Below, piece after piece: positions 39,721 to 63,953 of a stretch of DNA of 64,000 nucleotides. Position 1 is the stretch's first letter; each line of letters opens with the position of its first letter. The notes under the pieces were generated by a model. That model was not told the origin of the DNA, ran no database searches, and saw only the letters and a list, made by a program, of their open reading frames with translations. The stretch is from positions 51,336,001-51,400,000 of the forward strand of contig OZ287750.1 of NCBI GenBank assembly GCA_965649765.1, written 5' to 3'. The stretch is from Bispira polyomma (lineage: Eukaryota). The position numbers were made by a program, and so were the translations under genes.

Positions 39721-39949
39721 AATATTTGATTCTAAGGCACGTCAATCAGAAATAATAATTCTGCCAAAAAAGGCAACAAAAAAACTATGGTGGGAAGATT
39801 TTGTCAAACAAACAAAAATTTTCAAGTTTACCTTCAAAACTTTTTACTATTTTGTCACAGCAGCTAGATATGGTCTTTGTGGTGTAGTGGCACCATGCTT
39901 GTCCCCTACCTCTGTCGTCTGGAGGTACTGGGAGAGGTATGTGGGGAGA

Positions 39950-54697: not shown

Positions 54698-56440
54698 TTA
54701 GTACCAACCACACATAACTGCCAAAAACGGACTTAAAATAATGGACGAAACTGGTAGAAAGTGCTGTCTACAGACCAAAAACATCTTCTTAATACATGAT
54801 CTCGGATGGCTCCGCCCTCCAAGATAAAAACACTTGGTGAAAAGTCTTCCTAGAGTATTATGTCTAGCACCTTTCCAAACTATCCTATACTGCCACTCTA
54901 CCTCTCCTGCTGGAGAGCAAAAGTAATCTTTCAAGGTGTTTCGTAACTCTTTTGCCTCTCTTTTCGCATGATTGCCACTGAACGCACTAGGCACTATGCA
55001 TTGAACTCCTTGAAATGAATCAATATTGTTGTTTATCAGAGGAGCAACACCATCACCATCTGAAGCAATACCTTGTATGCCGGGTAACTGTGCTGGTCTA
55101 TTTCTCTTCTGCAAGAAATTGTAGAGAATGCAAGTAGCTTTCACAATTTTTTCAGCCATATCAGGATGCACGTTTAACCTCCTTTGATAAAGTCTCCACC
55201 TTTGGGTTAAAATGCCAAAAGTATTTTCTGAAATCCTCCTGGCTCGAGAAAGATGATAGTTAAAAATTAATTTATCCTCAGACTGGTTTTTTACCAGGGT
55301 AGAGCCTCATCAGGTATGACTTCAGGCGGAAGGCTGGGTCACCTACTATACAGTGGAGGATCAAAGCTCTTACTGGAGCATTTGGCAATTTGTCAGGAGG
55401 AGGAATCTGTAGCGAATTTGATTCTAAAGATTTACCTAATTGTGATTCTCTGAATATACCACCATCACTATTACTACCATAGCTTCTAACATCGATAATT
55501 GTGAAACAGTAATTGGCATAAACAAGGGCCATCACAATGGAGAAGGCACCTTTGTAATTAAAGTATAAAGAGCCTGAGTTTAGAGGGGCTTGAATGATGA
55601 CATGCTTGCCATCTATTGCCCCAATACAGTTGGGGCAATTCCAGCAAGCTTGGAATTTTTCGGCAATTCTTTTCCAAGATTCCATTGTAGGAACTGGCAT
55701 GTAGTCATTCACTAGGACATCCCACAAGGCCCGACACGTTTCGTCTACAATTTTCCCCACTGTACTTTTTCCAACTCTAAAACTAAATGCTACAGTCGTA
55801 AAGTAATCGCCTGTAGCCAAAAATCTTAGGCATGTGACTAATCTTTCTTTCAACAGATATGGCTCTTCTGAAGTCAGAATTTTCCATTTTAATGAGTGGT
55901 CTTACAAGGGAGACCAATAAGTCACACTGCTCAAAGTTTATGTGGAAGTATGTAAAAAATCTGTATTCATCATCATGTAGTTCTCTAATTATTCTGTGGT
56001 AGCGCCCTACTTCCTCACGTTTTCGGTTGATTTGATGAACCCATTCCCTACTTCTTTTTTGTTGCTGCATATAGTGAGCTAATAACAGTAACAGCATCTT
56101 TTCTCTCGTCTTACGTTTCTAAAAGTTTTAAATAAACATATGATGTTATTCACTAGATTAATTTGAATTTTGAATTACTTACCCCAAAATAACTATATCA
56201 TTAACCTTATTATAAATTCAACACAGACCAAAAAAAAAAGTTTTGAGAAAGCTACACATATATTAAAAGGGAGTATCTTCAACGCGTATCTTTTCAAAAG
56301 ACTAAACACTGACATTGTACACTTATGAAAATAAATTTAGATTTTTGGATGAATATAACATTACATATATGTTTACTACTGAATAACTTGCTATTTCTAT
56401 CTTTTTATATAATTTTATATAAAGACAAGGCACTTACCAT
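54698..56440 (-). pseudogene. Harbinger (HARBI1/DDE_Tnp_4-like) transposase with two frameshifts
   Basis: ERLVTCLRFLATG, NCIGAIDGKH (D), YFNYKG, GSNSDGGIF, VGDPAF (D) and FNYHLSRARRISENTFGIL (E), spread over ORFs 55783-56097, 55278-55853 and 54698-55171. A putative ATG-only first exon at 56438-56440 splices in frame to 56118. Confidence 0.92.
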
Positions 56441-57112: not shown

Positions 57113-57164
57113 CTTACTGGGTTAAGACTACACAGTATACAGCCAATCTGTCCACTAGGGTAGG
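57113..57164 (-). repeat. 52-bp duplicate of the 3' end of the interrupted SRM exon plus GTAAG
   Basis: The minus strand reads CCTACCCTAGTGGACAGATTGGCTGTATACTGTGTAGTCTTAACCCAGTAAG. This equals the exon end at 60522-60549 joined to 57194-57217, with one mismatch. Confidence 0.95.
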
Positions 57165-57198
57165 GTTAATACAGTTACCTTGTAGTGAGTGTACTTAC

Positions 57199-57217
57199 TG
57201 GGTTAAGACTACACAGT
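57199..57217 (-). CDS. SRM: SRM interrupted exon, 3' remainder, 19 nt (..LCSLNP)
   Basis: A CTG TGT AGT CTT AAC CCA followed by GTAAGT, directly after the LINE (TTA)n tail. Together with 60522-60648 it gives a 146-nt exon in frame with both neighbours. Confidence 0.9.
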
Positions 57218-60200
57218 ATAATAATAATAATAATAATAATAATAAAAGTTCTTCTATAGCGCAAAATCTACACAAAGTAATCAATGCGCTTAACAGCATA
57301 AATTATAAATTAATGTTCAAAAGCAAAACTGAAAAAGTGAGTTTTTAGTTTCTTTTTAAAAACACTGACTGCTGTACAGGTTTTCAGATGCTTTGGTAGA
57401 GTATTCCATAGCTTAGGTCCACAAACAGAAAATGCCCGATCTCCAAAGGTTTTTAACTTTGCCTTAGGAACTGTTAGCAAGTGTTTACTTGATGACCGCA
57501 GTAGTCGTGTGCTTTTGTGTGGAAGCAGCAGATCTTGGATATAAGGAGGTTCCAATCCTCTGATTGATTTAAACACCAAGAGAACAATTTTGTATTGAAT
57601 CCGGTATTTGACAGGTAACCAATGCAGTGTTCTCAAGCATTCAAGTGAACTTCTGTGCTCCATATTTGAATCTAACACAAGTCTAGCTGCACAATTTTGA
57701 ACTCTTTGCAGTTTATCTAATAGTGTTTTTGATATGCCAAAGAGAATACTATTACAATAGTCTAATTTTGACATGACGAGGGCTTGAACCACTGTTTTGG
57801 CTGCATCCATTGAGAGATTTGATCTAATGTATCTAATGTTCCTCAGCTAAAAGTAACAGGATCTGCAAAGTTGACTGACTTGCTTTTTCATATTGAGGTC
57901 TTGGTCAATAAATACTCCTAGATTCCTGACATATTTACTTGAACTGATGAGAGACTCACTCACTTTTATGGAGTTGATTGACATTTTACTTCGGTGGATG
58001 GAATTGCCGAGTAGTATAAATTCAGATTTATCCTGGTTTAATTTCAACTTGTTGTTGCTCATCCACTTGTTAATAGCATCAATACAGTTTTCAAGATTAC
58101 ATACTATATCGGCTTGATTGTCTATTTTGGGACTGAGGGATGTATAGAGTTGTGAGTCATCAGCATAAAGGTGATATTGAATGAGATGTTGTCCTATAAT
58201 CCCAGCCACTGGCTTGGTATACTTGCAGTAGAGGTCAGGTCCCATGACTGACCCTTGAGGTACACTATACTTCAAAGTATGTGGTTCAGATTTAGCACCA
58301 TCTATCACTACACTTTGACTTCTCTTATCCAGGTATGAGTGAAACCACCGGTGAGCTGTGCCTTGTATACCATACATGTCGTTCAATCTATTTAAGAGGA
58401 TTTTATGATCAACCGTGTCGAAGGCTGCTGAGAGATCAAGAAGTGTTAACAGAACAACCTTCTTGTTATCCAGTTCAAGCAGAATATCATTTACCACCTT
58501 CAATACTGCTGTTTCAGTGGAGTGACAGGGTCTGTATGTGGATTGATAAGGTTCATTTAGGCTATTTGAATCTATGTATTTTGAAAGTTGTTGGCATACA
58601 ACCTTTTCTACGAGCTTTGAGAGAAAAGGTAGGTTTGAAATTGGGTGAAAGTTTTTGAACACAGGATCAGCCCCTTCTTTCTTGAGAATTGGTGTGACAA
58701 CAGCTTGTTTAAAAAACTCAGGCATTTTTCCAGTTTGCAGAGACATATTTATTATGTTAGTTATGCAGGGTAGAAGATCAGACAAGCAATGCTTCAAAAG
58801 ACAAGTAGGAATAGGATCCAAAGAGCAGGATTTGGATGGGGCTCTAGTAATGAGTTCAGCTACCTCATCATGAGACAATGTCCGGAACTGTGTAAACTGA
58901 GCGGTAGATGCTCCAGTAGAGTCCCCTCCCTTCGTTTGTCTACAGTCCAAAAAATTCTTCCTTATATTATCAATCTTTTCAACAAAGAAACCACTGAAGC
59001 TATTCACCAGATCCTGTTTGTTACTGTGCGGTGGCAAGAGTTGAGGAGCCTCAGAGTGAGTAAGTTTGGCAACTGTCTTGAAAAGGGCCCGATGGTTGCC
59101 TTTGTGAGAGTCTATGTAGGTGCTGAAATACTCTGATTTGGCAGATCTTATGAGGGCATTAACCCTGTTTCGCTGAGCCTTGAATGAATCTCTGTCTGTT
59201 TTATTTTGAGACTTCCTCCATGCCCTTTCAAGTTTTCTGAGATTCCACTTTTCAATCTTTATTTGGTCACAGTTCCATGGTTGTTTTGGCTTACTTCTTA
59301 TAAAGCGGTCAATAAGAGGTGCATGATTGTCCAAAACGTTAAATAAACACTGATTGTATTGATCAACAAGTAGATCCAGATCATTGGTAGGTTTAGTGAT
59401 AACTTCAGATGCCTGTATGTCCTGTCTAAAAAGGTCAATGTCAATGCTGTTAATTTTTCTATAAGATACTCTTTTCTTTTCAGGAAGAGGTTTAGAGAGC
59501 TGAATATCAAAGATGAGTGACACATGGTCTGAGATGTAGAGATCATCTACAGGAGTGGATGAAATTAGTCCATCATCCTTCCTTGTAATAATCAGATCTA
59601 AAGTATGGCCAGATTGGTGGGTGGGACCTTGTACATGTTGAACTAAGTCATATGTGTCCAATATCTCATCAAGATGTCGGCGGTTGTTATCATTGATTTT
59701 GTCATAGTGGATGTTAAAATCACCTAGTATAAGCAACTGCTCCTTTTCTGGACAGATGATGTCTAGTAGTTCAAAAAAGTCGTGAAAAAACACTCCCATG
59801 GGATAAGAGTTTGAACCAGGTGGCCTATACACCACTACAAGTGTTAGACTCTTTGTGTTTTTACTAATTGAACTCAGGATGTATTCAAATGAGTCAAACT
59901 GTCTTTGATCATTGGGCTTAAAAACTAAGGCATCATTGTATATAACTGCAACACCTCCACCAGATTTAAGTTTCCTATGGACACTATGAATGCTGAAACC
60001 ATCAGGAGCTAAATCCTTAGTCATTGCATTGTCCTCATCCCTTAGCCATGTTTCAGTAAGTACAGTTATATCAAGCTTGTTTCCAATGATATAATCTGTC
60101 AGCACATTCACTTTATTCCTGGCTGATTGTGCATTCAACAAACACACATGTGTCAGAGAAAGGGGGTGGGGGGACTGGTTCACATCTAATGTATATCAGA

Positions 60201-60521
60201 TTGCTTTCATTAACACCAGGTCTTTTCAGTTGGTGTTGCCTCTTTACTCCTCCTCTTTTGCCACGTCTTGTTGATTTAGCATTTAACCCCAGGCTTTTTA
60301 TAGTACTAGTTATATCCTGATGTATCCTAGTTGCTGAGCTAATACCTGTTATTGTTAAGAGGTAATTTCTTGTGTATTGAGACAATTGTGAATTATCCCA
60401 ATTACCACTTGACACACACATTTCTACACAACAGCTGATCAAAAGAGTAATGACCTTGACACTAAAGGGCATTTTCAAGTCAACAAGTTTGAAAAATTAG
60501 CAAGAATATCCACATAAACAC
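57218..60521 (-). mobile_element. Young, near full-length single-ORF L2-clade LINE (APE endonuclease plus RT) inserted in an SRM coding exon
   Basis: LLNAQS, LTETWL, GGGVA, VYRPP, GDFN, HTLDL, SDH (APE); LDLSAAFDTVDH, VPQGSV, YADDSQ (RT). 3' stem-loop AGCGCA..TGCGCT and a (TTA)n tail at 57218-57244. Confidence 0.97.
57310..60472 (-). pseudogene. L2 ORF (EN-RT) with one frameshift near 60160-60180 and one in-frame TAG at 57847-57849
   Basis: ORFs 60113-60478, 57847-60183 and 57310-57810 join into one protein; SCYF*LRNIRYIRSNLSMDAAK continues in frame across the stop. Confidence 0.9.
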
Positions 60522-60648
60522 ATACAGCCAATCTGTCCACTGGGGTAGGTAGGAATGGTACAGTAAGAGTAATCTACCACTGGGTACAGCTGTCTACAGA
60601 ACTCCTGCATACTCCTGATCAGCTCCAAGTGTAGCCACAGGCATTCTC
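60522..60648 (-). CDS. SRM: SRM interrupted exon, 5' part, 127 nt
   Basis: TATTTAG acceptor; (G)[41 protein letters not shown], then an abrupt transition into the LINE 5' end. Confidence 0.95.
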
Positions 60649-60689
60649 CTAAATACAACACAGTGAGCTGGGAATAGAGGAGTCTATAT

Positions 60690-61500
60690 GGAAATCACAG
60701 TCTTTGCAGGCAATACCTTAGTCAAAAAGAGGAACTCAGTGTGCTAAAACCCAAAATCATTACAACGTACTATCACATGCAGTTACTGACATATAGTATG
60801 CACAAGGATTTTTAGGTCATAATTCCAAAGTTTAAGGTTGAAACAAGATCAAATCTTAACCCAATAAATATTTGTAACAAATACGGACCTTTTCAAACAA
60901 GCATGCAGTACTTAATGAGTTAGAGCGCACATATAATTTTGAGGTCAAGGTCAAAACCAGGGTTGGGGTCTATCACATGCCAAAAAAAATAACGAACTAA
61001 ATAAATACTATACTTATCACAATAATATTTGTTAAAAGCTTAATAAATCAGATACAAAATAGTCTTAGAGAAATCCAAGTCTATGACAGGCAATACTCTT
61101 TTGACTCAAAACTAAAGGTCATGATCAAATTAGATCAGCCTATGACATTTCTTAAGAGAATATGTATGTCACGTATACACTTCCAGTGGCACATAGTTCC
61201 TGAGATCTGCCGGGACAACAATTGTTTAGGTTAAGATCACTTCTCCAAGGTTAAATGTCAAAATGAGATAATGTACATTAGACAACAATTGTTTAGGTTA
61301 AGATCACTTCTCCAAGTAAAATGTCAAAATAAGATAATGTACATACCCTAGGCTAGCACACATTTCTACCAAATATAAAGTTCCTGTGACAACCAGTTTC
61401 CCAGATATGGTCTGCACAATAATCATAAGGACAAAAGTCACAAGCCCAAACTAAAAGATCAAATTGAAGTAAGACCTTAATTTCCCCCCAAATACCTTAC
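60690..61500. mobile_element. Degenerate Helentron/HINE-type repeat remnant
   Basis: Recurrent AGGTCA(A) motifs (GAGGTCAAGGTCAAAA, AAAGGTCATGATCAAA), AGTTCCTGAGAT, ACCAAATATAAAG, and a ~65-bp local duplication at 61213-61345. Confidence 0.45.
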
Positions 61501-61571
61501 AAATTCGAAAACCTACAGTAATATTACCCCAACAAGACATTAATTTTTATAAATATTTGGCCAGTTTTTAC

Positions 61572-61655
61572 CTTGTGCACAAATAATTCCACCAGGCCGC
61601 AGGGCAGACTTCATCAAGGCATAGTACTCCTTCTGGAATAATGACACAGCTGGTC
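61572..61655 (-). CDS. SRM: SRM internal exon, 84 nt
   Basis: TGTAG acceptor; (G)PAVSLFQKEYYALMKSALRPGGIICAQ(G); GTAAAA donor; phase 1/1. Confidence 0.95.
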
Positions 61656-62459
61656 CTACAGATACATAAACACTCTAAAGTAGTGTTGCGTGTTAGTAGT
61701 GTTATATATAACCGGCTTGTGAAAGAAAATTCTGGGCAGGTTTATTTTAGTTCTCACCTTTATACGTCTAGTGACACATAAAACAATAAAAATGTGTACA
61801 TGAGCCATAACTGTAAAGAGGATATGGATTTTCAGTAGCTTTTTAATACATAAATATATTAACTAAGCCCATAAGATGGGTATGATGTGAATATGGTGAA
61901 ATTACAAGGATTTCAAAGTTTGTACACAATTTTTTGTTCAAACCGGTTCTTGATTTTGACTTCCGATAAGATTGTTTTAGCATTTAAACCAAACTAAAAG
62001 CTATTATCCAGTCTTCTACACTACTGTAAATGTTGTCATACATACTATGATCCTTGGCCAACAGTCAGTCACTAAGAAATTTGTCCTTTTTTCTCAAGGT
62101 ATGATACACATACTGATTGTCAGCTGATTTTAGAGCTGATTTTCTAATACATAATTGTAAATGCAAAATTTACTTTTGCAATTGATTTGTTAGTAAATTC
62201 CACAGATTGATTTGTGCGGATTTTTCAACAGTAGAAATAAAAATGCAACATTGCACATATAGTGGACGATTTTAACTATGTTGTTTTTCCCCCTTTTTTT
62301 TGTCAGCAAGAAATCTCAATTCAGAAATAATTTCACGCCTTCATCAACCATTGAATTCACACTTTTGTCTACAACTAGAATACATATGAAAACATTTCTT
62401 TGTGATGAAATAATATGGACAAAGGATTATTAGGTCAAGGTCATAATTCTATATTGGGT

Positions 62460-62784: not shown

Positions 62785-62938
62785 CCACTGGGTCCGAAGA
62801 GTCTGTGATGATCACATCAAACTGGCCCTTGTGTTTCCCCATGAAGTCAAAGCCATCACCAATGTGTAGGGTCAGTTTAGGACTAGAAAAACCAGTGGAC
62901 ATGTAGCCCAGGTACTTCTTAGACACTTCGACAACTTT
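62785..62938 (-). CDS. SRM: SRM internal exon, 154 nt
   Basis: TTTTCAG acceptor; [51 protein letters not shown](G); GTAAAT donor. Confidence 0.97.
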
Positions 62939-63859: not shown

Positions 63860-63953
63860 CTCATCAATCTCACACATGGTAATCTGCTTGACATCTGGGA
63901 TCTTGTCCAATTCTCTCACTACTCCACCGTCTCCGCCCCCAATCACTAAAAAC
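63860..63953 (-). CDS. SRM: SRM exon with the dcSAM-binding GGGDGG motif (94 nt; probable extra T)
   Basis: TGTGTAG acceptor; GTTTTTA then GTG ATT GGG GGC GGA GAC GGT = (VL)[29 protein letters not shown]; GTCAGC donor. Confidence 0.93.

Follow-up and report, generated by a model that had tools for sequence, protein, structure and literature searches.

The spermidine synthase (SRM) gene of Bispira polyomma has probably moved to a new site by duplication followed by loss of the parent. The copy that runs through the window (the whole 64,000-nt stretch analysed here, positions 51,336,001 to 51,400,000 of contig OZ287750.1) would be the dead ancestral gene, copy A, and an intact copy on the same chromosome, copy B, would be the derived gene, carried in a unit bounded by the TIRs of a MITE; we put the probability of this reading at about three in four. 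A LINE lies within a coding exon of copy A, and the framing of this insertion as the knockout of an essential gene dissolves because an intact spare exists. The LINE insertion by itself is ordinary. What is unusual is the direction of the outcome, a dead parent and an intact daughter, together with the size of the TIR-bounded cargo. Coordinates are collected in Table 1, where C3 is the chromosome of the window and positions given by number only, there and in the text, are those of the window.

Table 1. Positions of the SRM exons, the LINE and the elements of the duplication.
Feature	Position	Strand	Remarks
SRM exon 1, copy A	C3:51401716-51401577, beyond the window	-	
SRM exon 2, copy A	C3:51400630-51400510, beyond the window	-	
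SRM exon 3, copy A	63860-63953	-	94 nt, extra T in run 63948-63952
SRM exon 4, copy A	62785-62938	-	154 nt, open
SRM exon 5, copy A	61572-61655	-	84 nt, open
SRM exon 6, 5' part, copy A	60522-60648	-	127 nt, AG acceptor
L2-like single-ORF LINE	57218-60521	-	3,304 nt, same strand as SRM
SRM exon 6, 3' part, copy A	57199-57217	-	19 nt, GTAAGT donor
Second, terminal minisatellite unit (exon-6 3' end and donor)	57113-57193	-	81 bp
SRM exon 7, copy A	50770-50892	-	123 nt, open
SRM last coding exon, copy A	50326-50343	-	stop included; VLEDK* (copy B VLEEDK*)
Parental block	39947-64000, on to position 77655 (C3:51413655)	.	duplicated at C3:79652892-79684050
SRM copy B	C3:79663262-79678181		same chromosome, 28 Mb from copy A; LINE-free
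Inner element	C3:79684051-79698185		foldback-like, 14.1 kb

Sequence inspection places copy A on the minus strand, with exon 6 cut by the LINE into two parts. The exons match PF01564 and PF17284 and are nearer to SRM than to spermine synthase, and exon 6 matches residues 210-249 of human SRM with an E value of 1.7e-17. The reading frame of copy A is not open over all of its exons, owing to the 94-nt exon 3 as well as to the LINE. Where exon 3 of copy B has four consecutive Ts copy A has five, giving 94 nt instead of 93, and the resulting frameshift leads to two in-frame stops upstream of the LINE; the extra T is at a homopolymer site, outside the stretch that was compared with read contigs. 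Copy A also has isoleucine at the methionine of YQEM, a position occupied by methionine in 19 of 20 homologues. Translation running from exon 6 into the LINE would meet a stop after nine further codons, and skipping of exon 6 shifts the frame because its 146 nt are not a multiple of three. The initial annotation had described the split of the exon into 127 and 19 nt, the product of read-through and the frameshift upon skipping; every one of its coordinates for the split proved exact, and the frame check bears out both consequences. It had likewise described a 3.3-kb, sense-oriented LINE with only TAT shared at its tail junction, and this too agrees with the element as we find it.

We take that LINE to be L2-like from its domain content, its tail and its sequence motifs. 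Endonuclease and reverse transcriptase (RT) domains (PF03372, PF14529 and PF00078, in one ORF) lie within 57847-60183, and a (TTA)n tail at 57218-57245 abuts the target. At the other end about 175 nt of the 5' UTR are absent, all five siblings extending that far upstream, and the junction shows 2-nt microhomology, AT being common to element and target. Because AT is shared at the 5' junction and TAT overlaps at the tail, the target duplication amounts to 0-3 nt. The ORF has gained one base at about 60166 and carries an in-frame stop at 57847-57849, and a hairpin is predicted near the 3' end at 57254-57296 (z -1.17). The first 352 nt are found in ten copies in the assembly at 97-100%. Over 1,595 nt the element differs from its nearest sibling at 13 positions, and eight changes, including the extra base near 60166, are private to it when set against at least four of the five siblings (about 0.5%); in two siblings the ORF is open across the 1.6 kb compared. 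Judged by these counts the LINE is young, though not brand new. Insertion of L2/CR1-group LINEs into exons of redundant duplicates is of a known type, and the element in the window resembles these LINEs in that endonuclease and RT share a single ORF, the tail is a short tandem repeat, the 5' end is truncated at a microhomology and there is little or no TSD. An older, decayed, antisense L2-like fragment lies at 48040-49420, downstream of the SRM 3' UTR.

The 3' end of exon 6 in copy A is also the first unit of a minisatellite with units of 81-85 bp, each made of the exon end and a donor; the array at the end of exon 6 in copy B has 4.8 units. The repeated unit (57113-57217; L015:9258-9656) corresponds to the 3'-terminal ~65 nt of coding exon 6 together with the donor, the codon for a conserved phenylalanine differs among units (TCT, TGT or TAT), and unit-to-unit exchange may be rewriting coding sequence. 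A stretch of 52 nt in the second unit (57113-57164) echoes the empty LINE insertion site; it was considered as a target duplication and rejected, since it is a minisatellite unit that is present in copy B as well. Might copy A still give enzyme, the LINE being spliced out by way of this repeated exon end? The insertion does create a strong donor (GCT/GTATGT at 60526), but one that lacks an in-frame acceptor, and among the 14 in-frame routes found by a local donor-acceptor frame check all use weak donors and all delete or add residues. No route gives the native exon, rescue through the 52-nt echo was therefore rejected, and the exon-3 frameshift would end translation earlier in any case, which leaves a productive copy A scarcely credible. 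It is also highly improbable that the LINE was misassembled into the minisatellite. The site does lie within a tandem repeat, and the junctions are those of the assembly, none of the contigs listed crossing either of them; however, the element is truncated at a 5' point of its own, where there is 2-nt microhomology, its tail stands against the target, it has private mutations, and the frameshift in exon 3 is a separate lesion.

Searching the complete assembly by protein family and with the exons, the latter one by one and by reference, found exactly two SRM loci, copies A and B. Two other matches to PF01564 were rejected as additional SRM copies, both being divergent spermine synthases at separate loci (C3:77338443-77338580 and C1:41087265-41087405). 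Copy B, read exon by exon, is open over all eight exons (137, 121, 93, 154, 84, 146, 123 and 21 nt), with GT-AG introns and no internal stop. Some of its residues are odd: it has serine where six of six homologues have phenylalanine (cysteine in copy A), phenylalanine where all 16 homologues have leucine or isoleucine (isoleucine in copy A), and aspartate where 104 of 110 have proline (glycine in copy A). As the only in-frame SRM of the assembly, copy B most likely supplies the enzyme. The initial annotation had proposed a genome search for other SRM copies, and the intact, LINE-free copy that this search found on the same chromosome supports its reading of copy A as a dying duplicate and speaks against gene loss in progress; a recent null allele of a single-copy gene, which it had also offered, is unlikely in view of the eight private changes of the LINE and the second frameshift. 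It had further held that an intact, expressed paralogue or allele would reduce the case to a tolerated pseudogene or a heterozygous insertion; copy B, intact in its frame and probably expressed, is such a paralogue and tells against the more dramatic readings.

A spliced contig of 968 nt from a related organism joins the whole of exon 6 to exon 7. Exon 5 begins at base 509 of this contig, after 508 nt (140+121+93+154), and this arithmetic puts the start of the contig precisely at the first coding exon's acceptor, a start that could reflect alternative 5' exons or spliced-leader trans-splicing.

Copies A and B lie in a shared, collinear block that takes in the whole SRM gene and about 10 kb on each side, measuring 37.7 kb in A (39947-77655) and 31.2 kb in B. 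When a query of 10 kb was used to gauge how far the duplication reaches, it matched repeats only. Substitutions between the two blocks range from 2 to 10% overall; they amount to 2-4% in the 5' half and, in the 3' half, mostly to 4-10%. A dozen insertions are specific to one copy or the other. The coding sequences differ by 18 synonymous and six non-synonymous changes, and the pN/pS of 0.09 implies that divergence took place mostly under selection and that the decay of copy A is recent. A broken Harbinger-like element (PF13359) at approximately 54700-56230, in intron 6, is common to both copies and is therefore older than the duplication. At the left breakpoint, position 39947, the block has a 3-nt AGA microhomology to the MITE, which taken alone is weak evidence. 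The right breakpoint (C3:51413640-51413690) cuts an exon-like, ATG-bearing stretch with a GT donor on the plus strand, which is whole in A and truncated in B. A neighbouring gene in head-to-head orientation may begin with it; the 16 kb that follow yielded no other exon of this candidate.

Which of the two copies is the parent? The flanks of A are single-copy on both sides and continue beyond both block ends, with no counterpart near B, and A is not bounded by the TIR element and contains no TIR of it. The first 265 nt of the right flank of B are unique, and there are no N gaps in the 66 kb around B or in the 94 kb around A. Since the flanks of A run on as single-copy sequence past the block ends and B lies inside a TIR/TSD unit, A would be the ancestral site and B the derived copy, judging from the structure of this one assembly.

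The unit that holds copy B (C3:79652830-79698222, 45,393 bp) contains the block and the inner element between perfect 37-bp inverted repeats (37/37), and it is flanked on each side by a perfect 9/9 TSD, GACGATACA, for which the chance of a 9-mer match is ~8e-6. The block begins ~62 nt inside the left MITE end, to which it is joined through AGA, and on the right it meets the exact terminus of the inner element, whose far terminus adjoins the final 37 nt of that MITE. The inner element has 35 matches, at up to 98%; together with a second copy at C1:41145146-41157721 it represents a 12-14-kb element with inverted satellite arms of 3-4.5 kb (49-, 80- and 129-bp units) and no long ORF. The 37-nt inverted match beside B was considered as a private rearrangement scar and rejected, because this sequence is a TIR that is conserved among the copies of a MITE. 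Free copies of this family are 200-245 bp long (~240 bp), start with TAG and end with CTA, and 12 of 18 have an exact 9-bp TSD. MULE and AcademH, both of which produce 9-10-bp TSDs, are candidates for its superfamily; no autonomous partner was found in the assembly searches. Another unit, 10,567 bp long and likewise bounded by these TIRs and an exact 9-bp TSD, lies at C3:47999992-48010558; the coding remnants within it, pogo-like DDE_1 and PHD-finger, are all degraded and probably belong to a nested element. At five independent loci (L053-L056 and L018:2560-2830) the TAG...CTA MITE has another repeat family as its neighbour, always facing it with the same end and at a distance of ~10-60 nt, the spacers differing; this may reflect a target preference.

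The read evidence consists of assembled contigs, which drop variants. In sample S2 both the A and the B type are present as exact matches over 61329-61676 (0 and 21 differences, 21 being the count between A and B), although the assembly may itself have been made from S2, which does not count as independent support. Its A-type and B-type depths are 6.8 and 9.6 in one comparison and 6.9 and 14.7 in another, the B type being 1.4-2.1 times deeper, and two depth calibrations disagree on copy number. Sample S1 has B-type bases over 60522-60839 and A-type bases beyond, and the A-specific base at 57169 is absent from it, a faint hint that either the dead haplotype or the duplication has not reached fixation.

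Might A and B be alleles of one locus, one of them misplaced, with the LINE a heterozygous null of a single-copy gene? Patchy divergence of 2-10% is possible for alleles of a polymorphic invertebrate, S1 seems recombinant between the two types, and in S2 the depths of A and B, added together, could be that of a single diploid locus. Misassembly, however, does not create the perfect TIR pair and TSD that bound B, the sequence is free of gaps, homology ends on both sides and the flanks of A have no counterpart near B, and such a false duplication is very unlikely. We also consider it unlikely, if less strongly so, that B is passive, unexpressed or weak and that the working gene is an intact allele which the other homologue carries at the ancestral site, the LINE haplotype being a heterozygous null. 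The odd serine, phenylalanine and aspartate of B would suit this explanation, the deeper B-type arm of S2 allows for a hidden third copy, and S1 is an A/B mosaic without the A-specific base. Against it, B has no frameshift, stop or splice lesion across an indel-rich block, two independent lesions and an aged LINE in A would be unlikely for an unsheltered null, and SRM loss in zebrafish is maternal-effect lethal (PMC4920196). Because of that lethality, the doubly broken state of copy A is best explained by shelter from copy B.

How, then, might the relocation by duplication and parent loss have come about? A duplicate of the SRM gene, with ~10 kb on each side, would have been placed 28 Mb from the original within one chromosome, in a MITE-bounded unit. 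The likeliest route would be break repair with template switching, begun by the inner element or by a break in the MITE, because the right junctions are exact element termini and the left one is a 3-nt microhomology; alternatively, the two exact termini would be compatible with a one-ended event of the inner element. The perfect TIRs and TSD, and the inner element only 2% from its family, suggest an event younger than the divergence of the 3' half implies, and part of the difference between A and B is probably older allelic variation. With B as a backup, selection on A would have relaxed. The LINE would then have entered exon 6 by target-primed reverse transcription, as its 5' truncation, microhomology and lack of a clear target duplication suggest; its ~0.5% of private changes would place it later than the duplication, an order that the 98% match of the inner element to its family fits. 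The 1-nt insertion in exon 3 and the change at the conserved methionine are observed in A, and relaxed selection would be their presumptive cause.

The dead A haplotype may conceivably be polymorphic. A larger version of this idea, which we find rather doubtful, is that the move itself is still polymorphic, the working SRM of some animals lying solely at the old site and that of others solely in the 45-kb unit. Crossing-over within the intervening 28 Mb would then yield SRM-less chromosomes, a within-species incompatibility arising from a giant Pack-TIR that is perhaps still mobile. If the two states do segregate, they would allow divergent resolution of duplicates to be tested directly in a wild animal.

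The unit around copy B is reminiscent of Pack-TIRs (Tan et al. 2021, PMC8277862), in which host DNA lies between the ends of one non-autonomous TIR element with a TSD, the parent is on the same chromosome and the breakpoint shows short microhomology. Both termini of the B unit belong to the same TIR element and are flanked by a TSD, copy A is a single unambiguous parent not bounded by the element, and AGA provides the microhomology at the left junction. The gap-filling model of Pack-TIRs that exist as single copies predicts two of these features, a source on the same chromosome and the microhomology (PMC8277862). Unlike the surveyed Pack-TIRs, the B unit packs a 31-kb eight-exon gene block and a 14-kb element, it is not chimeric, and it is single-copy rather than present in several loaded copies with differing TSDs. 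In the animal survey the median cargo was 224 bp, the internal lengths screened were 100-5,000 bp and the largest human case was 3,585 bp (PMC8277862); the ~45.3 kb of the B unit falls outside this range. By its sequence the B unit appears to work like a Pack-TIR beyond the surveyed size class, and it shows that TIR-bounded duplications can carry a complete eight-exon housekeeping gene; at ~9 times the limit of the published animal screen, such events would escape that screen.

The closest case is Drosophila Ssk-FB4, which took almost the whole of an essential gene and has TSDs of 9-10 bp (PMC8277862), but the parent of Ssk-FB4 remains whereas the SRM parent is dead. Plant Pack-MULEs and gene capture by Helitrons are alike in that a DNA transposon takes up host sequence, although Pack-MULEs are mostly 1-2 kb and capture of a full-length gene is exceptionally rare (PMC6431247). 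With both breakpoints, the vehicle and the parent-killing lesions readable, the SRM case records the relocation of an animal gene in fine detail. In its outcome it resembles pTAC14 of Mimulus, an essential gene that was duplicated and whose ancestral copy is non-functional while the derived copy is kept (PMC5896889): in both, the ancestral copy is lost after duplication and the derived copy stays. Unlike pTAC14, the SRM move is in an animal and within one chromosome, its vehicle was a pair of transposon ends and its parent was killed by a LINE, and it is known from genome structure, not from incompatibility.
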